This document shows positions 7,576-58,485 of a stretch of 64,000 nucleotides of DNA, one piece after another; within the stretch, counting starts at the first letter, position 1, and every line of letters begins with the position of its first letter. A program made the position numbers and the translations under genes. Origin of the DNA: Histomonas meleagridis 2922-C6/04-290x (Eukaryota > Protista > Parabasalia); NCBI GenBank assembly GCA_020184695.1, contig JAANOX010000277.1:62001-126000 (forward strand), given 5' to 3'. The notes below the pieces were generated by a model. That model was not told the DNA's origin, did no database searches, and was given only the letters and a program-made list of their open reading frames with translations.

Positions 7576-10130
7576 TTAAGGTATTATTAAAAAGATGTAA
7601 GAAATTAAAAGAAATTTTAATAACTCAGAGCGTGCATAAAAAAATGCTGTTTTAAATATATTGAATAATTTCCAAATATTAACTCACAACACCATAATAT
7701 AAAAAATTTATAGTGAATAAAGCAGAAAAATATCTTTTACATTAATATCAATTCCTTTTTGTGCAATAAGTAATTTAACTATTTCTATATAATCATACCA
7801 AGATGCTATCATAAGTGCTGTTCTAAATAATTTAAATAATTCCCAGATATTATTATGAAACAAAAAACAATTAAAATAAATTTCAAATAACACAAATAAA
7901 AAATTTGATCATTTATATTAATTCCTTCTTTTTCAAGAAGTAATTTAACGATTGTTATATGACCTTTTGAAGATGCTATCATAAGGGGTGTCCAAAATAT
8001 TTAAAATAATTTCCAAATATAATTTTGAAACATCAAATTATTATTATAAATTACATTTTTATAATTAATATTTATATCTTTTTGTGCAAGAAATAATTTG
8101 ACAATTTCAAGGTGATTACTTCTAATTGCAATTGTAAGTGATGTTTCATAATTTTTTAAATATTTCTATGAAATCCAAAATTTTTAAAACATATATTAAA
8201 TAAACAAAACAAATCATTGGGGCATTGACATTAATATTTTTATGTGCAAGAAGCAATTTAACTACTTCAATGTAACCTAAATCAGATGCAGCCATAATTG
8301 GTGTATAAAATATATTATATAATTTTCGAATATTACATTGAATTACCAAATAAGTTAAAAATAAATAAATACTTACTGTATTAACATCGATATCTTTACG
8401 TTTATAAAGTAACTTAACATAATTTACGAAATTTTTTTTTGTTGCCATCATAAGTGCTGTACGAAATTATTCAAATAATTTCTGAATATTATTTTTAAAT
8501 AAAAAATTCCTAAAAAAAAATATTGAATAAAACAAATAAAAATTCATAATATTGATATTAATTTCTTTTTGCGTAAGGCAGAATTTGACTAATTTTGTGT
8601 TTCTATTATAAATTGCCTTTTTAAGTTCAAGGCCAAAAAAGTATATTAAATTCCATGTTTAAAGAAAAAATATCAAATTATTAAAATAATATTTAAATAA
8701 AAGAAAATATCTTTTATATCAATATCTATTTTTTCACGTTTTGTAATGAATTTATATATTTCAGAACAATTTTTCTTTAGCCATAAAATCATTGATACTT
8801 CATATTCAAATTTAATCATTTTTTGATTGTATAAATATTTGAAAAGTTCTTTATTTCTTGATCTGATAGAAGAATACAAAATATTTTTCACATGCGTTTT
8901 AGTCTATTTTAAAAAATAATCAGCAAGAAAAATATTTCCTGTTATTATAGATTCTTTTATACATTCCTTATCAATTCTCATTCCTTCTTTTATTAAAAAT
9001 GCTAAAATTTCAAAGTTATAATATCTAATACATATTTTTCCTAATTTATATATATTAATAACTTTGTAACTTTTATTTTCATAAAGATAATGAAAAATAT
9101 CATTACGATGAAACATAATTGCTGTTTCATATGAATCTTCAAATGATGAATGATTTTGTTCACATAAATGAATTCCCTCTAATTTCCACTTGCAACTGCA
9201 TATTTACTTGTATCTTCTATTTCAGCGCAATTTATAAGTAAATGACGAAAACATTTAACTGATCCAAAAAATGCTGTATATTCAATTAATGAAACACCTT
9301 TTTTATTAATAAAATCACATCTTTCATTAAGTGATGGTTCAATAATTTGATTGAAATCAAAATTTGTTTGTGATGATATTTCTTGAAGTTTTCCTATTTC
9401 ATCATTTCGAATTATTTTTGCAATATCATTTGGATTATATCCTTCTTTAACATATTGTTTATGAAGTTCCCAATCAATTGCTGATCGTTTTTTATAATTT
9501 TCCAAATATATATATATATAAATATATAAATGAATAAAAATATAGGCCATCATTAAGGTATTCATAGTAATCTTCATCATCAGAGTAGTCATCATCAAAG
9601 TTATTTACATCAAAGTAATCAGAGGAAGTTATTTCTTCAGCTTTTTTATAATGCGCAAAATATAATGATTTCTTATTTTGTATTATTTCTTTTTTAATTA
9701 ATTTATTTTCATACATTTTTTGAAGAAAATAATTTGATTCCTGTGTTCTAAGGGAAAATAAGAAATTTGCAAAAACATCAATGACTTTATATATCTTTGG
9801 TTTCAGGAACTTAAAAATTTTTTTCTTCTTTCGCTTGAAGTAATTCCATGTAATCAAAACAAACGGTGAGATTTTGATTTTTTGACTTAAAATAAAAATA
9901 AATTAATTTACATATTATTATATTATATTATATGAATATAGATATTGATCTACAATAAATTTTAAAGTGGATTCAAATGATTGAATAATATTATTTTCAT
10001 TTAAATTAAATACAGTAGTCTCCAGATTTTGATAAATTTGAAGATTTTTATGGGGATTTCTTTCTTTTAGTGTTTGGATGTTTTTATCTTTTTGTTTTTT
10101 TCCTGTGGTGAGTGATTTCAACTTCCGCAT
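7576..10130 (-). pseudogene. DUF3447-ankyrin gene copy 1, decayed, with 17-nt-insert ankyrin linkers at 7.6-8.7 kb
   Basis: Seen: DWELHK/IIRNDEI/AAFFGSVKCF/AIMFHRNDIF motifs; in-frame stops near 9918 and 8904; a frameshift at a (TA)n tract near 9500-9540; six ankyrin units separated by lattice linkers, some with indels. Confidence 0.8.
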
Positions 10131-11093: not shown

Positions 11094-11812
11094 ATAATAA
11101 AAATATGTTTATATTGTTTTAATATATATGAACTGAATCATCATTTAAAGATGAAATTTGAGAAATGAATTAATAATGAAACTCATTTATCGAACTAACT
11201 TAAATTTTATTTGTTAAAAAAATGTATATTCATTATTATTTGATCTGATTCAAAATTTATAACAACAGTTTAATAAGGATTTTTTTCACATCATTGGGAA
11301 AAAAATAAATTTCAATAATTGCAAATTAATGTATAAAAGAAAAAATAATCAAAATAATGTGTAACAAAGAAATATATATATTTTGATCAAAATGTTTGCA
11401 GACTGAGATTGCCATGAAAAACCTGTAAAAGGGTGAAAGAACTATGAACTTACAACTAAAAAAATTTACTCCTAACTTTAATCATTTGATGCTTTTTTAA
11501 TATACTATAGCATTAATCATCGATAACATTAAAAAATATATATTTATTTTTTCGATTTAAATTTGTAATTTTCCCAATACTCCTATTTTTCACACACATT
11601 AACATGGATCTTTTTCTCGATTTTCTTTTTATATTTGAAATAACTAATTTTTATGGAAATGTTAAAATATCTATTAGCAAACAAATTGTTTATTAATTTA
11701 TGAAATATTTTCATTTTCTTATTCTATTTATGCACACAAAATATATATAAAACATAAAGAATATTTAATATTAAATTTTTATTTATTTCTTCCACACACA
11801 AACACCAAATGT

Positions 11813-12475
11813 TTACTTTGATATCTTCTTGAAAAGTCTCGATCTTCCCTGCAAAAGTTCATATGGCGAGTCGAGATATTTAAACGGAGTAAAGTTACGT
11901 AATGGCGTTGGAATACAAATCATTGACTTTGGAAAACATTCCATCAACACGTGTTTTGACGGCAATAATTTGTGAACATAATTACAATTTTCTTTGTGAA
12001 TGCAAGCTTCTTCTTTGCAGATGGAAGAAGAAAGCCTATCTGTTGGAACAAAAGACGAGTGAACGATCCTCCCAGCATAAAATCGATTTTCTAAAGCAAT
12101 ATGAGCAGCCATTGCTTCATCACATTCAGCATATCGAACAAAAACATTGCCTTGTAAGTGAGGGCTTAAGTTTGATGCTACAAACATGTCTTCTACTTTC
12201 CCAAATTGCTGTAATTCAAGAAAAATATCCATAAAAAAGGCATCAAATGATTGTTGAAGTAGAGATTCGGGAAAACAGCATTCTCCTTGTGGAAGAAAAG
12301 ATGTGAAAAGAGTTGGGTTTGGGTAAAGATGATGGAATACAAGACAACGACTCATCGGAGATGTCATATGAAGAAATTGGCAAAATTTACCACGAGGGCA
12401 GCATCCAGTTTTTTCGAAAAATGGACAAATTGTTGGGTCTCGCTCTTTTTGTGTGTTTTCCTCTTTTGTTGCCAT
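11813..12475 (-). CDS. U2AF35/ZRSR2-like splicing factor (CCCH - UHM - CCCH)
   Basis: Seen: CPFFEKTGCCPRGKFCQFLH, FGKVEDMFVASNLSPHLQGNVFVRY, RFYAGR and a second CCCH; first ATG at 12475. Confidence 0.85.
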   Translation of the reverse strand: MATKEENTQKERDPTICPFFEKTGCCPRGKFCQFLHMTSPMSRCLVFHHLYPNPTLFTSFLPQGECCFPESLLQQSFDAFFMDIFLELQQFGKVEDMFVASNLSPHLQGNVFVRYAECDEAMAAHIALENRFYAGRIVHSSFVPTDRLSSSICKEEACIHKENCNYVHKLLPSKHVLMECFPKSMICIPTPLRNFTPFKYLDSPYELLQGRSRLFKKISK

Positions 12476-12823
12476 ACACCCAAAATTAAAAGTTCTTGTA
12501 AATAACCGTCGATGCCGTTTAACCGTTATCACATTGAATTTGATTACTCAAAAAGTTGTTCATTTAACGGTCGCTTTCACACAACATTTTTTGATGAATA
12601 AAAATTTCAAAATAGGATTTTAAAATTTTATATGCCATTTCATTAATCTTCTATTTTCTAGAATGTGTTTATGATTATGGAATTAGTTTATCATTGTTTT
12701 CCTCAAATATTTTATCAAACACACAATTCAAAACTCGTTTTATCATTATAATTTTGGAATCTTTATTAATATTTTCTTGTTGTTTTTGTTTAATTAACTC
12801 AATTACTGCTGCGGAAACATAAA

Positions 12824-15183
12824 TTATGCTTTAGTATTAATATAAAATTCTTCTTGTTCAAGAAGTAATTCAACTATTTCTCTATAACCTTTATAAGATG
12901 CTAACATAAGTGCTGTATCAAATAATTTAAATTATTTCCAAATATTATTTTGAAACATTAAATCATTAAAATAAATATTAAATAAAAGAAATAAATATCT
13001 TTAGCATTAATATCAATTCCTTTTTGTTCAAGAAGTAATTTAACTATTTCTAATTTACCATTGTAAGATGCCCAAATAAGTGCTGTTCGAAATATTTTAA
13101 ATAATTTCCAAATATTATTTTGAAATCAAAAATTATTAAAATAAACTTTAAATAAAACAAATAAATATCTTTAGTATTAATATCAATTCCTTCTTGTTCA
13201 AGAAGTAATTTAACTATTTCTATATAACCATATTTAGATGCATGCATAAGTGCTGTCATATATAATTTGAATAATTTCCAAATATTATTTTGAAATTTCA
13301 AATTATTAAAATAAATATCAAATAAAACAAATAAATATCTTGATCATTAATATCAATTCCTTCTTGTTCAAGAAGTAATTTAAATATTTTTGCTTTACCT
13401 ATAAGAGATGCAATTATAAGCGCTGTTCTAAATTATCCAGATAGTTTCCAAATATTATTTTGAAATCCAAAATTATAAAAATAAATATTAAATAAAACAA
13501 ATAAATATTTCTAGCATTAATATCAATTCCTCTTTGTTCAAGAAGTAATTTAACTATATTACTTTTCATTGCATGCATAAGTGCTGTCCAAAATATTTTG
13601 AATAATTTCCAAATATTATTTTGAAAAACCAATTTACTAAAATAAATATCAAATAAAACAAATAAATATTTCTAGCATTAATATCAATTCCTTCTTGTTC
13701 AAGAAGTAATTTAACTATTTCTGTATGATCATATTGAGATGCTTTTATAAGTGCTGTATCATATAACTTAAATAATTTCCAAATATTATTTTGAAATCCA
13801 AAATTATAAAAATAAATTTTAAATAAAACAAATAAATATTTTTAGCATTAATGTCAATTCCTTCTTGTTCAAGAAGTAATTTAACTATTTCTGTATGACC
13901 ATTTGAAGATGCTTTCATAAGTGCTGTCCAAAATAATTTAAATAATTTCCAAATATTATTTTGAAATTTCAAATTGTTAACACAAATTTCGAATAAAACT
14001 AATAAATATCTTTTACATTAATATCAATTCCTTCTTGCTTTAATATATATTGAACATGTTCTATATTTTCTGATCCTGCTGAAAAAACTAAAATATCTTT
14101 TGGGATAGGATTTTCTTTAATTAAATATTTTGTAAGAAATATATTTCCTTTTTTTGCTGATTTATTTATAATAGAATCATTGATTTTCATTCCTTCTTTG
14201 AGTAGAAATGATAAAATTTCATAATTATAAAACGAAATACATTTCTTTCCTAAGTGATTCAAATCGATTTCATTAATTTTATTTTCATAAAGGTATTTAA
14301 AGATATCATTTCGATGAAATTCAATTGCTGCTTCATATGCATCTTTAAATGTTGAATGGTTTTGCTCACATAAATGAATAATTTCTTCATTTCCACCTGC
14401 AATTGCATATTTACCTGTGTTTATTACATTTGCTCCATTCATAAGTAAATATTTAAAACATTTAACTGAAGAAAAAAATGCTGCACAATCAATTAATGTA
14501 ACATTTCTTTGATTAACAAATGAACATCTTTCATACATTAATCGTCCAATTGTTTGATTAAAATCAAAATCACTTTGTGATGATATTTCTTGGAGTTTTT
14601 CTATTTCATCATTTAGAATTATTTTCATAATTTCATTTGGATCATGTCCTTCATTAATTAACTTCTTATGAAGTTCCCAATCATTCTTTTTAAGATTAAT
14701 TATATCTAAGTCAGCAATCAATTTTTTATCATACGAATCAAACAATTTAATTAATTCTTCATCTTTTTTGTAATGCATAAAATAAAGTGATTCATTTTTT
14801 TTAATAATTTTTTGATCAATTATTTTTTGCTCTATCATACAGTCTAAAAAATAATATGATTCACTCAAAAATTTAATATTCTTATTAATCAAATGTATAA
14901 ATACATCCAAAATCTTTGAATTACAATGAATGTTTTTTTCATATTCTTCAATTTTCTTTATAAAATCTAAACATATGTTGACATCACACTTTTTAATAGC
15001 AACCAATAAGAGTATCATTTGGCTAATAATTTGATTAAAAGAGTAAGAGTAATTTGAATCGAATATATCAATGATTGATTGTACTGATTGCGAAACATTA
15101 TCATGACTTAAACCAAAAATTACTTGTTTAATTAATTGAGATTTTTCCCATTCATTTGTATTAACATTTTTAGGAAATTGCAT
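12824..15183 (-). CDS. DUF3447-ankyrin gene copy 2: N-terminal ORF plus 7 ankyrin repeats, open only after deleting 28 x 17-nt inserts
   Basis: Seen: ORF 13999-15210 (ATG 15183) ends GIDINVKD-IY-stop. Seven repeats follow at a 170-nt period (one 161 nt, an in-frame 9-nt loss). Linkers are all 80 nt: 13928-14007, 13758-13837, 13588-13667, 13427-13506, 13257-13336, 13087-13166, 12917-12996. The processed product is inferred. Confidence 0.8.
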
Positions 15184-15555
15184 GACCAACACAATGGGAT
15201 CAACGAACAATTACTGAACGATATCTATCAAAAAGCTGCATTTTGTGAATCTTATATTGACACTTTTTGTCATTTATTGAACAAATAATAATTCAAATAG
15301 CATAAATAAAGCATACAAATGTTAATTGTATGCATAAATGGTTGGATAGAGTTCCACATAATACCGATCAATAAAGTATTTATTACGACTTTTTGAGAAT
15401 TTTACACATAATTGAATACTAAGTAATTTGTGAATTTCAACCTTTAAAACAGCTTTAGTTTTTGGTGTGTTTATAAACAAGTCATGTAGTCAATGTGCTT
15501 AAGCAGTGTTACATGTAAAATAAAAGGTTTTTGAAGAAAAGTTTATTAGAACTTT

Positions 15556-16311
15556 TTACTTGGCTTCTTCTGCCTTAGCTTCTTCCTCGACTGGGCGGGC
15601 GACTTCAGCAGCCTTTGTAATTGCACGACCTTGGTGGAGCTTCTTGAGCTCTTCGCCAGAGAATGTTGGTGCCTTGATAACTTTGATCTTTGTTACATAG
15701 ACATTATCAACTTGCATGATTGTCTTGCATTTTTCAACAATTGCCTTTTCGATTGTCTCGTTGACAATTGTGTTGCAGAGTTCTGGAATTGTGGACTTTT
15801 CAATTGTCTCTTTCATGATGGCAATGCAAGCATCTCTGATTTCACGCTTCTTGGATTGTTGAGCATAGCATGCTTTCTTGTTTGGATTTAATTTCTTAGT
15901 GAAGCCAATGCTGAAGGCACGGAGAATGTAACCATCGGCTGTACGAACATCAACTTGAGCATTGATGAGTGTGCGATACTTACGGAGGAGGGAAGAAAGC
16001 TTGTCGTTTGTAAGTCTCATTCCTGCGAAAACAGTTAAGACATCATTGTTTTGAACATCAACTGATTTCCAGCTGAAGAGACGGTATGCGTGTGATTGTT
16101 CATCAACGAGATCACCGTGTGAAAGTTCGAAAACACGGTTGTTGAGGTAATCTGCTGGTGTTTTACCACGAGCACATTTGTGTGAGACTGTGAAGCCAAT
16201 ATCACGTTTCGAGAAGAAACCTGGAACGAAAACGTGACGCCATTCCTTCTTTAAGAAAGTATCTTGCTTGATTTTCTTTGAGGCCTTGCCCTTTTGCTGA
16301 GCTTTACCCAT
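15556..16311 (-). CDS. RPS3A: 40S ribosomal protein S3a (eS1)
   Basis: Seen: DTFLKKEW, RVFELSHGDL, VDVRTADGYILRAF, IKVIKAP; a CCTTT (M5-like) motif just upstream of the ATG. Confidence 0.97.
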   Translation of the reverse strand: MGKAQQKGKASKKIKQDTFLKKEWRHVFVPGFFSKRDIGFTVSHKCARGKTPADYLNNRVFELSHGDLVDEQSHAYRLFSWKSVDVQNNDVLTVFAGMRLTNDKLSSLLRKYRTLINAQVDVRTADGYILRAFSIGFTKKLNPNKKACYAQQSKKREIRDACIAIMKETIEKSTIPELCNTIVNETIEKAIVEKCKTIMQVDNVYVTKIKVIKAPTFSGEELKKLHQGRAITKAAEVARPVEEEAKAEEAK

Positions 16312-16687
16312 TTCCCAAAAGGAGCGACCACAACCGCTTTTCAGGTATCAAAACCGTTTTGGGGCGCCCTTAAACCAACATTTTTGTATGAAACAAAAAA
16401 ATCATCTTAACATTAATTTTAAAAAATAATTGATATAGAATATATTCATCTGCATGCTATATAACACGTTATGTTATAATATTATTTTTATATTTTTAAA
16501 AATTAATGATTTACATATGCAATGAAATTTTGTTAATTTTTATCTGTTTTAAAAACACACTAGATAAATAGACATTGTTTATATTTTAATTTTTTATTCA
16601 AATGATTTTGATTTGGATGAATATGTGATCTTGACTGTAAATCAATTTGAATGAAATCAACGTTCGTTTAGAATTGTCTGGAATTTA

Positions 16688-17905
16688 ATGTCTGTAAGTG
16701 GATTTAAGTCAATGCCTTTTAAACGTTCTGCCACAGATAGAATGGGAATGAACTATATGCAGAGGGGAACCGAAGAAGATATGGAAGAAACTGATATTGA
16801 TATTTATGAAAATAATTCAAGTTTTTCATCTAAACCAGTTAGAGTCCCAATAACTTCTACACATGCACCACAATTAGAGTCGCCAATTACATTATTTAAG
16901 AGGATTATTAATCGAGAAAAATCGATATATGTTAATAATATCCGTTACAATCGCCTTGAAATGATTGGATCAGGTTCTGAATCCAAAATATACAAAGTGT
17001 TTGACAGCAATGGTAATTTTTATGCTTTAAAAGTAGTTAATTATGAAGACAACCCCTCAATTCTTGAAAACTATCAAAACGAAATTGAACTTTTACAAGA
17101 CCTTCAGGACGACGATCGTATTATCAACATTATCGACAGTGAAATCAATACAGAAGATAATTTGATATTAATTGTTCTCGAGCTTGGTGATGCAGATCTC
17201 CGTAGCATAATTTCTAGTCAAGAGCGGCTTACGCCAAACTATCTCCGGTATACATGGCAACAAATGCTTGAAGCTGTTCAAACTATCCATGAAAATAAGA
17301 TCATCCATGGAAATCTTAAGCCATCAAACTTCCTTATGGTAAAGCGTACGCTCAAGCTTATTGATTTTGGCTTTGCCAAAGTCATTCAAGGGGATGCCAC
17401 AAGTACCGAATTCTATCAACAAAGCAACAGTTTTCAATACAAAGCACCAGAATCATTTTCAGATTGGAAACACCCTGTAAAACTTAGTACATCCGCTGAT
17501 GTATGGAGTATTGGATGTATCCTTTATGAACTTGCATATGGTCGACCACCTTTTTCATCATCTATTAATCTTGGCGACAAAATTGTTATAAAGTTCGATG
17601 TACTTAAAGATTTTCCTGATTTCGAATTATTAAAAAATGTAATGCAAAAGTGCCTTCAGCCTAATCCTAAGCTAAGGCCAACCATTGAAGAGTTGCTTTG
17701 TCATCCATATATACAGCAGCCTTCGACTTCATTTGTTTCAAGATCACTTTCCATAGCGGATAATTTGGGAGGATTGGCAAAACAAATACAACAAAAGTAT
17801 AGCGATCGAGAATTTAATAGCGAAGCAGGACATAAAATTATAAGGAGAATGGCAAGAGAGCTAACTGATGGGCGACAAATGATGATATCAAATCCGAAAA
17901 TATAA
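16688..17905 (+). CDS. Mps1/TTK-like protein kinase, catalytic Asp replaced by Asn
   Basis: Seen: YALK, NEIELL..L, LRYTWQQMLEAVQTIHE, HGNLKPSNFL, KLIDFG, DVWSIGCILYELAYGRPPF. Confidence 0.85.
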   Translation: MSVSGFKSMPFKRSATDRMGMNYMQRGTEEDMEETDIDIYENNSSFSSKPVRVPITSTHAPQLESPITLFKRIINREKSIYVNNIRYNRLEMIGSGSESKIYKVFDSNGNFYALKVVNYEDNPSILENYQNEIELLQDLQDDDRIINIIDSEINTEDNLILIVLELGDADLRSIISSQERLTPNYLRYTWQQMLEAVQTIHENKIIHGNLKPSNFLMVKRTLKLIDFGFAKVIQGDATSTEFYQQSNSFQYKAPESFSDWKHPVKLSTSADVWSIGCILYELAYGRPPFSSSINLGDKIVIKFDVLKDFPDFELLKNVMQKCLQPNPKLRPTIEELLCHPYIQQPSTSFVSRSLSIADNLGGLAKQIQQKYSDREFNSEAGHKIIRRMARELTDGRQMMISNPKI

Positions 17906-18732
17906 TAAATGTTTAGATTATATATTTTAATTCTTTTCTTATATTCATATGAATCTTTCGATTTTTTATTTTCTGTTTTCTGTAATATTTCGATAAAACA
18001 CTTGAAATATTATTGTACTTAAGTGATTCTTATATATTATAAAATAATTTTTTTGAGGATATTTTTTTTTTTAATGAATAACTAAATGTAGACATTTTTT
18101 ATAACTGACTATGAAGGAAAAATTACAATTTATAGAAATATCAAGTTTGCTTATGATTTTATTATTCTTTTGAAAAGAAGTAATCTTGCATGCAAGAGAT
18201 TATAGATATGAATATAAAATAATTTCTTTCTAACATTGTACGAGTACTTTAAGTGATAAGGAAAATTGCTAAAACATATGTTATAGCGGATGAAAATTAA
18301 AAAATGTAATTTAGTTTTACTCAATTTCAATTTTCCAAAGATACTATCTTTGTTTTCCCTTTATGGAAGAGCTTGTAAATAAATATATCATTGATGTAGG
18401 TTTTGTTTTCTCATAATTTGCAAATGATATTTTAAAAGTTTCATATTATTTGTTCACAAATGAATGCGAATTATATGGAAGTCAATTTGATATATTTTTT
18501 ATAAAATACTTGGAAAAATTGAAAAATTATGAATAAAATTTCGTTTACTTATTTACCCAAAATGTTTTAGGCACTTTTCGATGATACTATGTATGGAATT
18601 TTTGCGGACAAAATTTACAAAAATTTACATTTGATCGATATAATTTCTGCTGTTTCAAATGAGTTATTTTTTATAACAAAACGCAACGAAATTACCACAA
18701 AACAAACAAATATTTATTTATTTCAAACACTT

Positions 18733-21660
18733 TCACTTGCCGATGAAGTCGTAATTTTTAATTGGCGCCTGTTGTGCCAACGAATTTTCGACCAAGTCCA
18801 AGTCCAAACTAAACGCGAGGGAAGACTTTAAGTCTGGTTCCAAATGCTTTGCGGAGCTTATCAAGAACGTTCTATACTTATACAGCTTGTTCACCAGGTA
18901 CACGAAGCCAACGATGTCTACGACGATTTCCTGAATGGAAACGGGCGATTTCTCATCGATGCTTTCGAGGAGTCCTCCGAGGAATCGCGATGCGACTTCT
19001 TGCTCATCCTTTAATCGCAAAATGTTTGGGAATGTTATCGATATGTACGCGATTAGTTTCGTTGCGTCATGATCAATTAGGTCCAAACTTGAACAAAACG
19101 CTTGCTTTAATACGTCGATTGAAGCGTATTCCAAAAGTTTTTTTAATGTTTCGAGCGCTAATAAGTTTAAATTGTTTTTCATTGTTTCGACAAAGAATTT
19201 ATATGATATGTTTGGTGGTAATTGTGATATAAATCGTGCAAAATGCGTGCTGACGTTTTTAAGGGATTTAATGGGAGAATGTAAATCAAATAATGGTCGG
19301 ACTAAATCATTAACTATCATATTATTATCTTCTTGTCGAACTAATATTGAAACAACTGAAAATGTTAACGCATGAAGAAATTGTGATTGATATTCTTTAG
19401 TAACAATATTAGGATATTGATATAAAGGCATATCTAACTCAGCTAAAAGTTGAATAATATCATATATTTGCGTTTCATTATAAGGCTTATAATATTCTTC
19501 CGAATCAGGTAACATTTGCGTGATTTGATCAAATTTTTTCCTGATTTGAGAAGGTGTGATTGAGTGATTTCCCTCTAAAAAAGTGACAATCCAATGTAAT
19601 GGTGTTTTATCATCTTTAATTAATGGTTCTATCATTGCATCCAGAAGTCTTAAGCTTAAATCAATATGATTATTGATTATCAAATATTTAAATAAGTGCT
19701 GAGCAGTTGGTAAAGTAATTTTAGAAATGGTTATGCCAAATTTTATTTTTGAGTAGTTTACAAGTGTTTTGTTCTGTAAAAGTTTTATCGTACATGAAGT
19801 GATTGCTTCAGCAAAATTTGTAATTGTTAAAAGATTCGAAGAAGCGAAAACTCTTATATAAATATGTAAATTTTCGGGAGGAACACTTTTTATTAGGTAA
19901 TCGAACGAAACCTTATTTTTATAAAAAGTACTTAACATTTTTAATATGTTTAATGACGTTTCATTATAATCGATATTTAAAGTATAATTTATATTTGTTA
20001 TAGCGAAGTTTGGTTTATTTTGATATATGAAAGGTAACTTATTCATTAACATAACAATTAATTCTTTAGCTTGATTCGATTTATTAGGCTCGAAGAAAGC
20101 GCACGTGTTTTGTAAGTTCTCTATGAATTCTAATATTATAAATATATCTTTACATGTTGTTAACTTTTCGCGAATGTTTTTCGATATAACTCCATTTCGT
20201 GTTTTTAATAACTTCGATATTATAACGCGCGAATAGAACTCAATTTCGCGATTCTTTAAACATTCCAACAAAAAAGGTATTAAATTCTTATGGAATGATA
20301 ATCCGCAAATGATATGTATTCCTTTATCTATCATCCAACTTAAAACAGCTTTTAATACATTTAAGTCATTAATGTTCATATATTTCTTCATAAAGAATTT
20401 ATAATTCGTCGGCATTATTGTGGCTACAATAGAAGTTAATGTGTCAATAACTCGTTCAGGAATTCCTTCTTCGCCAAAGAATCGTTTATAATTACTAAAG
20501 ATTAAAAACACAAATTGTTGGAAAAATGGAAAATCAAACATAGCTAAGTTCACTGGTTGTAATGCGTTTTCTTTTGAAGCTTCAAGGATTAAAGTGAATT
20601 TGGTATTCGTTGGTTGATCTATGAAATGCATTAATCGTAATTTTAATGGTAAGTTATAAATTTCTTTATCTTTTTGTTCGATTTTAAAGTATTTATATAA
20701 ATAAAATGGTACTAACTCAATAAAGTCATCAAGTTCATGATCTAATGTTACATCTATGATTCGATATTGATTATCAATGATTTGTCGTGCTTCTTCTGTG
20801 GATAAATTACTCCCAACTAATGAGTTTGGAATTAATAAACTATATAGATTCGAATTACTTGGAATGTTACTAATAATGGCATAGATTAGAAATGGGGAAT
20901 AATATGGTAAATCTAAAAGATCTAAACAAAGTTTTTGTCCATCGATTTTGTTGTTTAAACTAAAGATAAAAACATACCGAAAAATAACAGAAAAGATAAA
21001 CATAAGTTGAGTATGTTTGGCAACACGATTTTGGTTGTATTTCTTGATTAATTTGAGAATGGCTAATGTGATAAAATTTTGATTTTGAACTGATAGGTCA
21101 ATGATTTTAAACATACGGGTGGAGGCATGATTTAATATAAACTTTTCATATTGTGTTATGATCATTTTGGACATCATTTGATTATCAACTATCTCATATA
21201 AAAACATAGGGCGCTCGGAAATGTCACTAATGATCGGATTAACTGTATGCGATGGACCTAAAAGATATGAGGAATAAAAAGAAGAAGGAAACATGAAATT
21301 GGATAATGTCATAATACGAAAAAAATAATTTCGATAATAATGACCTGAACTAAGTTCGGAGTGGCGTGAATTCCAATTAAGAAAATGTGATCCAAAAAAA
21401 AGAATTAACGGTGGAACTTTCATTTCAATAAGTCTTGATAAATGATAAGCTTTGCTGATTTGTGTAGAATCCGAATTGTCAGCATTAGCATTGTTACTTA
21501 TCCAAAACCCTAAAAAGGCAAATACTGGAACAATTTGAGATGTGGTTGATTCATTAATTAAACTTGCAATAGAATCAAAATCTGTTTCACTTGTGTTAAG
21601 AAATCGTACAACTCGATCAAAAAGAACATTAGATGGCTTTAAATTAAGTGTTGATTTCAT
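18733..21660 (-). CDS. Large hypothetical, probably alpha-helical protein
   Basis: Seen: uninterrupted 975-aa ATG-started ORF; no family recognised with confidence. Confidence 0.8.
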   Translation of the reverse strand: MKSTLNLKPSNVLFDRVVRFLNTSETDFDSIASLINESTTSQIVPVFAFLGFWISNNANADNSDSTQISKAYHLSRLIEMKVPPLILFFGSHFLNWNSRHSELSSGHYYRNYFFRIMTLSNFMFPSSFYSSYLLGPSHTVNPIISDISERPMFLYEIVDNQMMSKMIITQYEKFILNHASTRMFKIIDLSVQNQNFITLAILKLIKKYNQNRVAKHTQLMFIFSVIFRYVFIFSLNNKIDGQKLCLDLLDLPYYSPFLIYAIISNIPSNSNLYSLLIPNSLVGSNLSTEEARQIIDNQYRIIDVTLDHELDDFIELVPFYLYKYFKIEQKDKEIYNLPLKLRLMHFIDQPTNTKFTLILEASKENALQPVNLAMFDFPFFQQFVFLIFSNYKRFFGEEGIPERVIDTLTSIVATIMPTNYKFFMKKYMNINDLNVLKAVLSWMIDKGIHIICGLSFHKNLIPFLLECLKNREIEFYSRVIISKLLKTRNGVISKNIREKLTTCKDIFIILEFIENLQNTCAFFEPNKSNQAKELIVMLMNKLPFIYQNKPNFAITNINYTLNIDYNETSLNILKMLSTFYKNKVSFDYLIKSVPPENLHIYIRVFASSNLLTITNFAEAITSCTIKLLQNKTLVNYSKIKFGITISKITLPTAQHLFKYLIINNHIDLSLRLLDAMIEPLIKDDKTPLHWIVTFLEGNHSITPSQIRKKFDQITQMLPDSEEYYKPYNETQIYDIIQLLAELDMPLYQYPNIVTKEYQSQFLHALTFSVVSILVRQEDNNMIVNDLVRPLFDLHSPIKSLKNVSTHFARFISQLPPNISYKFFVETMKNNLNLLALETLKKLLEYASIDVLKQAFCSSLDLIDHDATKLIAYISITFPNILRLKDEQEVASRFLGGLLESIDEKSPVSIQEIVVDIVGFVYLVNKLYKYRTFLISSAKHLEPDLKSSLAFSLDLDLVENSLAQQAPIKNYDFIGK

Positions 21661-23341: not shown

Positions 23342-24144
23342 CACTAAAGGTTTAAAAAATGATGTGAACTATTTTCCGGCAAAATTAAAACTTCTGACAC
23401 AAATACTGTGAAAATAGAGTACGCACAGTGTTGTTTTGTCAATTGAAACTTATAGAAAAAAATGAATTTCCTGTCACTGATGGTTTATAAAATGCCAAGT
23501 CTTTTGACAAAAAATTGATAGAAGTCTCAATTGAAATTTTTCAAAGACTTTTGAAATAAGTCGTCGAATAATCAAACATTAAAACATTCAAGCTTAGATA
23601 TTCACAAAATTAAAATTTTCATGAAAGGAATAACAATAAATTTTGATAATTAAACGCATTTTAATGCTTATCACCAATCGAATACCCATTGAATATTCAT
23701 CACTCATCACATAACATTTCAGTCCTATCGTTCATTATAAAGTTTGTGGTTGGGCAAAATTTTGTGCCCGGGCATGTAAAATTTGTGCCCTTTCCCATGT
23801 CTAGATACAGATACAAAATCACAGGCGTGAAAGGATAAAGCGCCGTGATTAGGCGTTTTTGGTGAGCAACATAGCTTTAGTGTTTGCTTGGATAGTACCG
23901 AGATTCATTAAAAAATCACTCCAATTCTGTATTAAACATTTTCAAAATCATTGGAATTGGAGTGATTTTAGAATTATGCTCAACCATGTTGAGGAGAACA
24001 CCCAAGCCATGTTTTTTGCGAACATTTGGTCTTCGAGTTGATTTTAATATTGTAAACAATATATGCTTTATTTCCATTTCTTATTGAAAATGAAGATTTG
24101 ATGTTTGTAGAAGAGGAATCTGATTTAAAATTTTCGTTTGAACT

Positions 24145-26454
24145 TTATTCACGAAGTACATTTACTATTTCTGTGTAACCTTTTTGGTGTGCAATTTGAG
24201 TTGCAGTAAAATATTGTTAAAACATATTCTAAATTATTAAAACACATATAAAATTATTAAAACATATATAAAATCATTAAAATGAATATTTTTTGCATTA
24301 ACATCAATTCCTTCTTTGTCTAAAAGCAATTTTACTATTTCTATATTATTATTTCTAACTGCGATATGAAGTGCTGTTTCAAATTATTAAAACATATTTC
24401 AAATTATTAAAACATATTAAAAATTATTAAAACATATTTCAAATTATTCAAATGAATATTTCAAATTATTAAAACATATATAAAATCATTAAAATGAATA
24501 TTTTTTGCATTAACATCAATTCCTTCTTTGTCTAAAAGCAATTTTACTATTTCTATATTATTATTTCTAACTGCGATATGAAGTGCTGTTTCAAATTATT
24601 AAAACATATTTCAAATTATTAAAACATATTTTAAATTATTAAAACATATTTTAAATTATTCAAATGAATATTTTTTGCATTAACATCAATTCCTTTATCT
24701 AAAAGTAATTTTACAATTTCTATATTATTATTTCTAACTGCTACATGAAGTGCTGTTTCAAATTATTAAAACATATTCCAAATTATTTAAACATATTCCA
24801 AATTATTAAAATAAATCCAAAATTATTAAAACAAATCCAAAATTATTAAAACATATTATAAATTATGAAAACATATTGCAAATTATTAAAACATATTCTA
24901 AATTATTAAAACATATTATAAATTATTAAAACATATATAAAATTATTAAAATGAATAGTTTTTGCATTAACATCAATTCCTTCTTTATCTAAAAGTAATA
25001 TTACTGTTTCTCTATTATTATTTCTAACTGCTATATGAAGAGCTGTTTCAAATTATTAAAACATATTCCAAATTATTAAAACATATCCAAAATTATTAAA
25101 ACATATTTTAAATTATTCAAATGAATATTTTTTGCATTAACATCAATTCCTTCTTGTTTAAGAAGTATTTTAACAATTTCTGTATGACCTTTTTCAGATG
25201 CTAAAACAAGTGCTTTATCAAAATTTATAATAAAAATTTAAATCGTATTTTAAAATATCAAATAGTTTTAATAAAATTTCAATAAAATTTTCAAACACTT
25301 CTCTTTAAATTAATATATTTATGATTAATAAGGTAGTCAAAAAATTCTTCCTTGATAGAAATCTCTGAAATCTCTAAAAAATTTAATGAAATTTTATTAT
25401 TTTCGAGGAAATATAAAAAAATTAAAATATTTCCTGTTCTAATAGAATTGATGATATGATTCTTATTGATATTCATTCCTTCTTCTTTTAAAAATGAAAG
25501 AAGATCAAAATTATCATGTAAAATACATTTTTTTCCTAATTCTTCTAAATTATTATCAGGATTAATTTTATTTTCATAAATATATTTAAAGATATCATTT
25601 CGGTGAAACATAATTGCTGTTTCATATGTTTTATAAAATGATGAATGATTTTGTTCACATAAATGAATGATTTCTTCATTTCCACCTGCAATTGCATATT
25701 TGCCTGTTTTTATTACATTTGCTCCATTCATAAGCAAATATTTAAAACATTTAACTGAAGAAAAAAATGCTGCATAATCAATTAATGTAACATTTTTCTG
25801 ATTAACAAATGAACATCTTTCATAAAGTGATGGCTCAATTATTTGATTAAAATCAAAATCACTTTGTGATGATATTTCTTGAAATTTTTCGATTTCATCA
25901 TTACGAATTATTGTTGCAATATCATTTGGATTATGTCCTTCTTTAACATATTTCTTATGAAGTTCAAAATTTTCAGAAAGATCTTTGAAATTATATTCAT
26001 TTTTGAATTTAAACCTTTGAGATTGCAATTTTATGAATTCTTCTTCTGAAACATAATGTATATAAAAAGGATTATTTTTATTTTGAATAATTTTTGGTTC
26101 TATTAATTTACTTTCAATCATATTTTCAAGAAGATAATTTGAATCTTCATTATTAATTGTTAATAAAAACTGAGTAACAACATTAATTAAGGTATTATTC
26201 GATTTTATTTCTGCTTTCTGTAAATACTTGATGCATAATTTTTCAAATCCTTTGGAAACAAAATATGAATAAATAATTCTGCTAATAATGTGAAGGAATG
26301 AAATTGGAAATTCTTGAGAAAAGTATTGAAAAGAAGATTCGACTGATTGATCAATATTTTCCTCATTTAAATCGAAAATAATTCTCTCAACAGCTTGCAA
26401 AATTTGAAGGTTTTCGTTATATTTGAGAATCGATTGACTTTGATTTCCCCCCAC
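24145..26454 (-). CDS. DUF3447-ankyrin gene copy 3: GTG-started ORF plus 6 ankyrin units with tandem 17+3-nt linkers
   Basis: Seen: ORF 25291-26454. Linkers: 25217-25296 (80), 25047-25126 (80), 24757-24956 (200), 24590-24669 (80), 24378-24499 (122), 24208-24287 (80). The terminal cap TATQIAHQKGYTEIVNVLRE-stop ends at 24145. One linker carries a 5-nt element that breaks frame. Confidence 0.7.
24757..24956 (-). repeat. Tandem 10 x 20-nt array: near-constant 17-mer ATATGTTTTAATAATTT plus variable triplet
   Basis: Seen directly; the triplets TAT ATA AGA GCA ATA TGG TGG GGA GGA GAA encode YIRAIWWGGE. Confidence 0.95.
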
Positions 26455-27991: not shown

Positions 27992-30805
27992 ATGTTTGTA
28001 CAACGTTCGTTAACAAATGAGCAACCCATTAAACCAGAAATTGAATACTTGCAATCAATTGCAAAAGCTGTTCGTGATCTGAATGCTGAAAATATAGAAT
28101 CAATCACTCAAATAATCATGAAATTATTTGATAAAACTTATCCGATTTCTTTCAACATTGTTATTTATCGATTAATATACACATTTTTCCATTCTAAAAG
28201 ATGTGATGTTCTGATATATTTTAAATTTTTAGAATCCATTGAAAAAAATGAAGAACAAATTCTTCAATGGATCCGATGCTACCGATCGGTACAAATATTT
28301 AAAATGTTCTTTCGTTTTCTTCATTCTGATATCACTCCAGAATCAAATTATATTATATCAAAATTATTTGAGCATAAATTAGTTGATCCTAATTTAATGA
28401 AAATTAAAAATAATATATTTTTCTTAAATTATATGACCACAGATGAATTTCAAAGTTATAAATCACGAAATGTTTTACACTCAGATAATGATTTATTCTC
28501 AAATATTGATGAACTACGAAAAGATAATTGGAAACTTCATCTAAAATACATAGAAGAAGGGAATTCTTCAGAAATAGCAAAAGCGATTCGAAGTGATGAT
28601 ATTGAAACACTTCAAAAAATATCATCACAACAAGACTTCAAAATTAATTCACTTATCAATGATTCTTTATATGAGAGATATAATATTTTTTATGATGATT
28701 TAGTATATGTACAACGTGGTGTAACGTTAATTGAGTATGCTGCGTTTTTTGGTTCAATTCAATGCTTTAAATTTTTGTTATTAAATGGAGCAAATATAAG
28801 TAATGAAGATAATAAACCTTCACTGTCAATAATTAACAATTATACATCAAAATATGTAATGAAATATGCAATTGCAGGAGGAAATCTTGAAATAATTCAG
28901 CTTTGCGAGCAAAATCATTCATCATATAAGGGATGTAGTGAAATAGCAATTGAATATCAAAGAAATGATATTTTTTATTATCTTTATGATAATGGTCATA
29001 TTGAATTAAAGGACGAACATCATATTGGACCTATAAAACCCAAAGCTCCTCAAACAAGAGAAGATATATTGGAAAAATTGATTGTTAAATGTATTCAATC
29101 AAATAACTTTGAAATTCTTTCATTTTTAGAAAAAGAAGTACCATATGGTTCATATAATTGGTATTTAATAAGCCATCACATAATCCAAACAGGAAATTTA
29201 TATCTTGTTAAATGCCTTATTCATGAAAATAAATTTTTAACAAATCCAGTGGTTGCAGCTTATTCTGGAAATGTTGAACTTGTTGAATTTATCCTTAATC
29301 AAAAAGGAGTTAATATTAATGCAGAAGAAGTTTGTTTTATTAGTTTTTAATTTTATTATGATATTTAGTTGAAATTTTGCAAATTATTTGGAACAGCTCT
29401 TATGCAAGCATTTATGGTTATATTGAGATTGTTAAATTACTTCTTAAGCAAGAAGGAATTGATATTAATAGAGAAAGTGAGTATATAAAATTTTTCATAC
29501 TTATTAAATTAATTTGGAAATAATTTTTATTGTTTAAAACAGCACTTATATGTGCATCTGAAAATGGCCAAATAGAAATAGTTAAATTACTTCTGGAACA
29601 AAAAGGAATTGATGTTAATGCTAAAACTATTTATTTGTTTTGTTTAATGTTTATTTTAATAATTTAATATTTCAATATAATATTTGGAAATTATTTGAAA
29701 TATTTTGGTCACCACTTAGGTGTGCATCTGAAAATGGCCAAACAGAAATAGTTAAATTCCTTCTTGAACAAGAAGGAATTGATATTAATGTTAAAGATAT
29801 TTATTTATTTTATTTAATGTTTATTTTAATAATTTGATATTTCTAAGTAATGTTTGTAAAATGTTTAAATAATTTAAAACAGCACTTATTTGGGCATCTG
29901 AAAAAGGTCATACAGAAATAGTTAAATTACTTCTGGAACAAAAAGGAATTGATATTAATGTCAAAGATAAAATAAATTTTAATAATTTTTTGTTTCAAAA
30001 TAATATTTGGAAATTATTTAAATTATTTGAAACAGCACTTATGTTTGCATCTGAAAAAGGTCATACAGAAATAGTTAAGTTACTTCTTGAACAAGAAGGA
30101 ATTGATATGAATGCTAAAGATATTTATTTGTTTTATTTTTTATTTATTTTAATAATTTTATATTTCAAAATAATATTTGGAAATTATTTAAATTATTTCA
30201 AACAGCACTTATATGTGCAAGTGGTCATATAAAAATATTTAAATTACTTCTTGAACAAAAAGGAATTGATGTTAATGCTAGAAATATTTATTTGTTTTGT
30301 TTCGAATTTGTTTTCATAATATGATGTTTAAAAATAATATTTGGAAAATGTTGAAATTATTTAATACAGCGCTTATTTTAGCTCTTCAACGAAATCAAAT
30401 TGAAATTGCTAAATTACTTCTTGAACAAGAAGGAATTGATATTAATACTGAAAATTTTTATTTGCTCGATACAAAAAAATTTTTAATATTTTTTTATTTC
30501 AAACTAATATTTGGAAATATTTTAAATTATTTGATACAGCACTTACGTGGACAAATAGAACGTCAGAAATTGCTAAATTACTTTGCGATAAAGGTGCTAT
30601 CGAAAAGCCTCGATCTAAACCTTCAGTAAATCTAGGATGTTCCAAATTTAACAAAAGCACAAGCGAAGATATAGGATCTGGACCTACATTAGGAAATTTC
30701 ACATTTGATAAAAATTCTAACCGAGGTTTAGGATCTGGACCTACATCAGGAAACTTCACATTTAACAATAACCAAGATGAGAGCTTAGGATTTAGCGGAT
30801 TTTAA
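27992..30805 (+). CDS. DUF3447-ankyrin gene copy 4 with 8 lattice linkers and a GSGPT-GNFTF C-terminal tail (first junction damaged, possibly a pseudogene)
   Basis: Seen: ORF 27992-29350. Linkers: 29330-29392 (63), 29479-29538 (60), 29629-29708, 29799-29878, 29969-30031 (63), 30122-30201, 30286-30365, 30456-30535 (others 80). The last segment 30536-30805 is an open 89-aa frame. The first linker has a TGA triplet and the first repeat is 4 nt short. Confidence 0.7.
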
Positions 30806-58234: not shown

Positions 58235-58485
58235 TTAAATTTTATATTCTTGAAATAATTTGTAAATATCATTTTTTCTCTTTGAAGAAGCAAGCATAAG
58301 CGCTGTTTCAAATAAATCAAATAATTTCCAAATATTATTTTAAAATATCACATTATTTAAATTTATTTTATCTTTAGCATTAATATCAATTCCTTCTTGT
58401 TCAAGAAGTAATTTAACTATTTCTGTATGACCTTTTTCAGATGCCCAAATAAGAAGTGCTGTTTCAAATATTTTATATAATTTCC
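58235..58485 (-). pseudogene. Orphan 3' fragment of an ankyrin array with lattice linkers
   Basis: Seen: GGA-[17]-GAA, repeat TALLIWASEKGHTEIVKLLLEQEGIDINAKD, a 63-nt linker (58307-58369) giving KDGE, and cap TALMLASSKRKNDIYKLFQEYKI-stop. Confidence 0.8.

Follow-up and report, generated by a model that had tools for sequence, protein, structure and literature searches.

The 64,000-nucleotide (nt) stretch of Histomonas meleagridis DNA analysed here (contig JAANOX010000277.1, positions 62,001 to 126,000; hereafter the window) is AT-rich, with about 28% GC, the value reported for the genome (28%, PMC8529796), and carries closely packed, long, intron-less open reading frames (ORFs) in the standard code. 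One minus-strand ORF of 403 amino acids (13999–15210) matches DUF3447 and ankyrin repeats, and is directly continued by an array with a 170-nt tandem period (Tandem Repeats Finder, 12819–14037). An earlier reading of the letters alone (hereafter the original prediction) proposed that this array stores the codons of ankyrin hairpins as single triplets between 17-nt inserts, which would be removed precisely by non-canonical splicing, ribosomal bypass or DNA excision.

Our parse of the array, with a hidden Markov model (HMM) made from the repeats themselves, gives seven open ankyrin helix pieces of 90 nt that alternate with seven linkers, each of them exactly 80 nt long (Table 1). The only insertion or deletion inside a repeat is the in-frame 9-nt loss that reduces piece 3 to 81 nt. 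Each linker comprises four units of a 17-nt spacer followed by a 3-nt triplet, at linker positions 18–20, 38–40, 58–60 and 78–80, and the triplets read EEGW, KWGD, DGGW, NWGR, DEGM, KLGR and NNGD, with GGA third in seven of seven linkers and no stop among the 28. Left unprocessed, the linkers carry stops: the frame of the 403-amino-acid ORF meets a TAG three codons inside linker A. On all of these points the original prediction was accurate. The ankyrin cores (helix-turn-helix) match the family as they stand, and the D-x-x-G-x-T hairpin appears only when the spacers are left out. As the seven units are tandem duplicates, the seven GGA triplets do not count as seven independent events, and independent support for the design comes from other loci. 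Half a linker, written as a degenerate pattern, has 6 matches in the window where 0.00 are expected.

Table 1. The interrupted ankyrin locus and its copies in the window. Within every linker the triplets occupy end−19 to end−17, end−39 to end−37, end−59 to end−57 and start to start+2 of the positions listed.
Feature	Positions	Strand	Details
N-terminal part, DUF3447 and divergent ankyrin repeats	14008–15210	−	last ankyrin piece 14008–14097
Linker A, 80 nt, EEGW	13928–14007	−	GAA 13988–13990, GAA 13968–13970, GGA 13948–13950, TGG 13928–13930
Ankyrin helix piece 1, 30 codons, open	13838–13927	−	
Linker B, 80 nt, KWGD	13758–13837	−	
Ankyrin helix piece 2	13668–13757	−	
Linker C, 80 nt, DGGW	13588–13667	−	
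Ankyrin helix piece 3, 81 nt (9-nt in-frame loss)	13507–13587	−	
Linker D, 80 nt, NWGR	13427–13506	−	
Ankyrin helix piece 4	13337–13426	−	
Linker E, 80 nt, DEGM	13257–13336	−	
Ankyrin helix piece 5	13167–13256	−	
Linker F, 80 nt, KLGR	13087–13166	−	
Ankyrin helix piece 6	12997–13086	−	
Linker G, 80 nt, NNGD	12917–12996	−	
Ankyrin helix piece 7 and TAA stop (12824–12826)	12824–12916	−	3′ untranslated region to ~12740
Array 2, second gene	24118–25300	−	near-invariant 17-mer and variable triplet; linkers of 4, 10, 4, ~6, ~6 and 4 units
Array 3, third gene	29239–30805	+	80-nt linkers and one 63-nt linker, then C-terminal tail
Decayed paralogue	7640–9860	−	stops in N-terminal domain; linkers of 81, 66, 70, 63 and 80 nt
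Orphan fragment	58240–58480	−	two pieces and a 63-nt linker without first spacer

Beyond this array, the window has three more copies of the design and one fragment. The family extends to a locus of an H. meleagridis assembly (L003), where about 45 pieces spread over 8 kb without a gene model listed there, and to gut-metagenome relatives (L001, L005–L008), which have N-terminal domains of only about 50% identity and the same design with GC-richer spacers that are strongly diverged in sequence. About 90 linkers were parsed, with lengths of 80 nt (47 linkers), 63 nt (7), 83 nt (5), 81 nt (3) and 26 nt (3), plus single cases. The 47 linkers of 80 nt, drawn from the window, L003, L001 and L005–L008, provide 188 spacers with the consensus R-TTT-N9-A-TTT (R at position 1 in 180 of 188, T at 2–4, A at 14 in 143 of 188, T at 15–17). 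Linkers of this length from all sources align without gaps (33 of the 47 were aligned), although spacer interiors differ by 35–39%. Spacers begin with AT (96), GT (53) or AA (21) and end in TT in 159 cases and in AG in none; for the 60 window spacers in 80-nt linkers the starts are AT (40), AA (12), GT (6) and TT (2), and 54 end in TT, as the original prediction described them.

Whole spacers and whole codons also explain junctions of 63, 83, 60, 26, 9 and 200 nt. A 63-nt linker corresponds to three spacers, 26 nt to one and 200 nt to ten, and 83 nt to four spacers with five codons (RLNGD, NHNGQ, IKTGR, FRTGD). One junction in L003 reads K-V-R-N where its homologues read K-V/I-[17 nt]-R-N, a difference of exactly one spacer. 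Linkers that do not parse are concentrated in copies with independent signs of decay. Judged by these alignments, the 17-mers behave as discrete units of constant length, strictly so across diverged species.

The isolated triplets avoid stops in a way that points to translation. None of the 188 triplets is a stop, against 12.5 expected from column shuffles, and 0 of 20,000 shuffles reach zero; the shuffles retain column composition and ignore relatedness, and because repeats within an array are related the counts are not independent. A register one base upstream has 86 stops in the same 47 linkers. Triplets beginning with T include TGG, TGT, TGC and TAT, never TAA, TAG or TGA, despite A being the commonest base at the second and third positions. 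Triplets 1 and 2, which are flanked by spacers on both sides, have no stops where 5.4 are expected. Read without their spacers, all 47 linkers are free of stops and, with the pieces open themselves, removal of the spacers yields one open frame.

Rates of change follow the same division. Within the 12824–14010 array, spacers diverge by 0.107 per site, on a par with the 0.099 at synonymous sites of the pieces. The non-synonymous sites of the pieces diverge by 0.187, a ratio (omega) of 2.0 (bootstrap 1.08–5.2), and those of triplets 1, 2 and 4 by 0.60. The minimum number of changes per column is 1.67 for these triplets and 0.34 for the spacers, a fivefold difference (Mann–Whitney, 8e-6), and in the ten-unit linker of array 2 it is 2.0 for triplets and 0.24 for spacers. 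The variable codons of the pieces are 5, 8, 9, 11, 12 and 28–30, with codons 8, 9 and 28 equivalent to consensus ankyrin positions 13, 14 and 33. Together with the variable triplets, these three make up positions 2, 3, 5, 13, 14 and 33, the surface that is varied at random when ankyrin binders are designed. Pieces located behind linkers in older arrays are stop-free and have omega values of 0.68 (0.50–0.91) and 0.43 (0.28–0.65). A neutral tandem repeat or pseudogene would be expected to have even substitution and chance-rate stops and indels; the excess of changes in triplets over spacers, the missing stops and the lack of linker indels all depart from this expectation. These patterns show that the triplets and downstream pieces evolve as translated codons in a register that omits the spacers. 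The triplets thus act as codons, and this requires the spacers to be passed over.

We considered whether the arrays could instead be untranslated 3′ tails, with the protein ending in the first linker and the coding appearance inherited or refreshed by gene conversion. The Histomonas-type N-terminal ORFs whose ends were examined (P0002, P0014) do terminate in the first linker, unprocessed RNA is present, the public assembly has no gene models over the arrays, and many arrays are lesioned or dead, in a family that clearly includes many dying copies. Such tails are, however, hard to reconcile with units that share homologous spacers and have nevertheless diverged at an omega that is less than 1 in old arrays and exceeds 1 for the surface positions of the 12824–14010 array, or with stop-free triplets 1 and 2. 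Spacer length stays exact while spacer sequence drifts, and conversion tracts cannot jump spacers. Copies that are dead do have indels and stops in this same window, where the decayed paralogue shows what relaxed constraint looks like. Stop avoidance, modular lengths, rates and omega values all indicate that units sharing homologous spacers kept evolving as protein in the spacer-free register, and we regard untranslated tails as unlikely.

Two further readings concern what is taken out of the linker. It could be removed whole, as one non-canonical intron, leaving 30-residue repeats, with the 20-nt sub-period and TTTGGAA serving as internal signals or relics. Removal of a linker is always in frame, linkers of the GC-richer relative mostly start with GT, and TTTGGAA is the best conserved linker motif, with a similar TTTGGA and a third-spacer-like segment in the longer linkers of Tritrichomonas foetus. 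This scheme leaves the stop avoidance, the hypervariable triplets and the 17-nt modular length classes unexplained, deprives the ankyrin repeats of their hairpin turn and gives a 3′ end without AG; we consider it improbable. An ordinary GT...AG intron across the linker was also tried and rejected, being 76 nt long and out of frame.

Conversely, the linker could itself be translated, either as a 21-residue aromatic loop (x-VYFNNF-x-FQNNIW-xxFKLF-x) from the 63 nt left when the first spacer is removed or absent, or through a single −1/+2 frameshift. Linkers of 63 nt are in frame, ORFs of metagenome relatives (P0019–P0025) span two or three repeats, a 9-nt in-frame deletion in the relative L081 spans a spacer/triplet border, and the fourth spacer contains a slippery-type heptamer, U-UUA-AAU. 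Yet removal of the first spacer alone leaves only about 23 of 54 linkers open (4 of 7 in the 12824–14010 array, 2 of 5 in L001), and a single frameshift finds a stop-free path in 26 of 47, compared with 47 of 47 for the skipping register. As a general explanation this is very improbable. For some metagenome relatives, read-through of 63-nt linkers as an aromatic loop is possible to judge from their ORFs: in L081, L082 and P0019–P0025, in-frame 63-nt linkers produce ORFs in which the ankyrin cores are separated by a 21-residue loop, x-VYFNNF-x-FQNNIWNFFKLF-x.

The explanation that we favour is that the gene encodes a DUF3447 domain and, after it, seven ankyrin repeats of the ordinary kind with 34 residues. 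Each repeat would have its four beta-hairpin codons (x-x-G-x, between ...N-x-K-D and T-A-L...) stored singly, each codon after a 17-nt T-rich spacer, and every spacer would be skipped in expression. RNA-level excision is favoured by the constant length of the spacers, by their conserved ends and by their precise, intron-like loss; it would be the work of a splicing-type activity that is non-canonical, measures length and leaves micro-exons of 3 nt. New loop codons would arise through duplication of the 20-nt unit of spacer and codon, and the loss of a spacer would be as precise as that of an intron. Skipping predicts the junction peptides DEEGWTALMK, WGDTALIK, NDGGWTALMHAMK and DNNGDTALMLASYK.

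RNA was assessed in four runs presumed to be RNA, in the form of Logan contigs, which lose rare forms. The gene is transcribed from the ORF through a 3′ end near 12740, and RNA-run depth at the 3′ untranslated region is similar to that over the N-terminal ORF. Intergenic bins are empty, indicating low DNA carry-over. Unprocessed RNA is a major species, and its abundance suggests that excision, if it takes place, may be slow or incomplete. Uninterrupted hairpins (KNGK, NYGE, RNGK and others) occur in thousands of RNA contigs of the family, and these are either processed products or transcripts of uninterrupted genes. One RNA contig joins 13086 to 12991 (...AAA GAT ATT TAT GGA GAC ACA GCA...), its hairpin starting with the initial six bases of the first spacer; it may come from an ordinary paralogue or reflect a different cut. 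We dropped an apparent 25–100-fold depletion of the linker (depth at 12988 versus piece bins), as uninterrupted-hairpin contigs at the same border total similarly low. The share of array words present in a run was also set aside as evidence, since RNA runs and DNA runs overlap in it.

Protein searches were aimed at uninterrupted paralogues and at full-length products derived from transcripts. A region search gave no match, a profile search of representatives was overwhelmed by generic giant ankyrin proteins, and the protein search with a 75-amino-acid ORF matched only metagenome ORFs. A pattern scan of JGI metagenomes returned 72 matches, all simple repeats or chance and none in ankyrin context.

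Several observations weigh against RNA-level excision. None of the 15 listed of 428 joints in RNA contigs is a predicted spacer-free junction, and the listed joints and loose ends all bear hairpins of other family members. Instead, an 83-nt RNA-run contig (12934–13016) equals unprocessed linker G with 0 mismatches, its depth in run X3 is 59 compared with about 21 at a unique ORF region, and the RNA runs hold 0.43–0.48 of the array 31-mers, above the 0.35 attainable from the pieces alone. The original prediction is upheld as regards triplets that behave as hairpin codons and 17-mers that behave as discrete, skipped units; for its precise removal, the junction check that it called for finds the locus transcribed and linker G unprocessed, and none of the expected joints among those listed.

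Intron signals were looked for as well. GT...AG and AT-AC termini are absent from the 188 spacers, as the original prediction had noted for this array. Trichomonad introns have a 5′ motif GYAYGY/GTWYWD and a fused branch/3′ motif, RCTAACACAYAG, and are at least 23 nt long (PMC12316389); the window lacks the branch/3′ motif even when 1 mismatch is tolerated, the spacer profile does not agree with the extended 5′ motif across the 188 spacers, and 17 nt lies below the minimum length. No consensus RNA structure was found across 33 linkers, and an Rfam search of the spacer region gave no match. The spacer end motif is too loose in a genome of 28% GC to define sites alone, and elsewhere in the window we found no 17-nt element whose removal joins the frame of another gene. 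Finally, individual copies break the rules: both 122-nt linkers of array 2 contain one 19-nt spacer, a lesion if spacers are skipped, the first unit of array 3 has a 4-nt deletion, the long array of L003 has an 81-nt linker, and L081 has TAA as its first triplet. The 19-nt spacer is the usual 17-mer with AT in front, and a 212-nt duplication of 98% identity inside array 2 (24281–24673, minus strand) copies a linker that contains it. Either the lesion arose recently or the length of spacers is less than strictly fixed.

The codon-level evidence is compatible with any route of skipping, and the array might be decoded without RNA excision, by ribosomes that hop over the spacers or by excision of the spacers from an expressed copy of the DNA. 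Translational skipping predicts abundant unprocessed linker RNA, as seen, and the same conserved nascent peptide (...LLLEQEGIDINAKD) precedes every spacer series. Bypass in T4 gene 60 requires a nascent-peptide signal. Translational bypassing, in T4 gene 60 and in the byps of Magnusiomyces capitatus mitochondria, resembles our arrays in that short inserts are kept in the mRNA and can be many per gene, but it requires matched take-off and landing codons, a stall codon and gaps of 27–55 nt, none of which the spacers have: only 3 of 188 spacers end in three bases identical to the take-off codon, and the first codon of a spacer is a sense codon, ATT or GTT, not a stop or hungry codon. There is also no conserved stem-loop, and each protein would require 28 serial hops of near-perfect efficiency. 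Bypass in its known form, one of the routes named in the original prediction, is contradicted by these features. Excision at the DNA level, another of those routes, is unsupported, as DNA runs hold the interrupted form (0.73–0.76 of array words; chicken-gut metagenomes hold 0.05–0.06). Ciliate internal eliminated sequences are likewise short, AT-rich inserts that are removed precisely from coding DNA, but their removal takes place in the DNA of a somatic nucleus, their boundaries are of the TA type and in Paramecium they measure at least ~26 bp. We know of no nuclear dualism or germline–soma split in parabasalids. Decoding by either of these means is, in our estimation, unlikely.

RNA-level excision has partial parallels. 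Ultra-short spliceosomal introns (15–16 nt in Stentor, 18–21 in the Bigelowiella nucleomorph, 23–25 for Trichomonas type B; PMC12316389) are likewise tiny, AT-rich and near-fixed in length, and share with the spacers conserved ends, free interiors, frame-restoring removal, and precise gain and loss. They differ in having GT-AG ends and a branch motif, and in being scattered through all kinds of gene between normal exons, whereas the spacers start with R-TTT, end with A-TTT, stand four in series around 3-nt exons and occur only in ankyrin hairpins. Micro-exons of 1–3 nt in fungi, plants and animals (for example PMC12940212) demonstrate correct joining of exons no longer than a codon, as would be required here; known ones are single, between long canonical introns, and those proposed here form tandem series that recur hundreds of times. 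The non-canonical introns and introners of Fritillaria, Amoebophrya and euglenids have non-GT-AG boundaries and spread as repeats, like the spacers, but they greatly exceed these in length and depend on terminal repeats or secondary structure for recognition, and no such structure was found in the linkers. Our literature search found no description of a design of single codons and 17-nt spacers.

Taken together, the cell probably skips the 17-base spacers by a process that has not been described. That they are skipped through RNA-level excision, possibly slow, which restores 34-residue repeats, is a tentative proposal, if the likeliest of the routes considered. We are somewhat readier to accept the broader statement: on balance, an undescribed step in Histomonas and its relatives appears to remove or skip fixed 17-nt spacers between single codons, such that hundreds of ankyrin genes would store their target-binding hairpin loops at 20 nt per codon and vary them by unit duplication. 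The machinery would amount to a novel type of recoding or else to a novel intron class, with members that lack GT-AG ends, are measured by length and leave exons of 3 nt.

Provided that skipping takes place, these genes have an architecture without precedent, in which single codons are interleaved with non-coding units of fixed length. Their introns would be shorter and less canonical than any others known, in a lineage credited with a few dozen rigidly defined ones, or else the genes would reveal a new recoding route. Current annotations of Histomonas and of the Tritrichomonas lineage would then lack a great many ankyrin proteins, and the largest repeat family of a host-associated parasite would have its fastest-evolving residues in isolated codons.

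The only relatives of the N-terminal ORF found by protein search have 35–55% identity and comprise gut-metagenome ORFs together with one protein each from H. meleagridis and T. foetus. At the equivalent place, T. foetus has intervening sequences of 49–137 nt, without the 17-nt module. In its locus L004 (7734–8800), ankyrin pieces go on past the annotated stop of P0017, and the separators of 49, 94 and 137 nt begin with GT, end other than in AG, and contain TTTGGA and a third-spacer-like segment, TTCAAAATGATATT; they may be an older or a different form of the same thing.

Within L003, positions 16222–20833 comprise an intact N-terminal ORF of 475 amino acids and, behind it, no fewer than 19 ankyrin pieces together with spacers; the public assembly lists no gene model there. 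Inside an H. meleagridis paralogue at this locus lies a mariner-like transposon (11200–12500) that has terminal inverted repeats; the annotated P0015 terminates within the transposon, and the array beyond has stops and odd linker lengths. Directly downstream of the 12824–14010 array in the window is a U2AF small-subunit-like gene (11813–12475, minus strand) with a CCCH zinc finger, an RRM-like middle and a second CCCH, and one 1109-nt contig of run X2 connects this gene with the last ankyrin piece. The C-terminal tail of array 3 (30536–30805, plus strand) encodes 89 amino acids in the frame of the last piece, without a start of its own; it is rich in G, S and P and contains 19-residue repeats (GSGPTxGNFTF).

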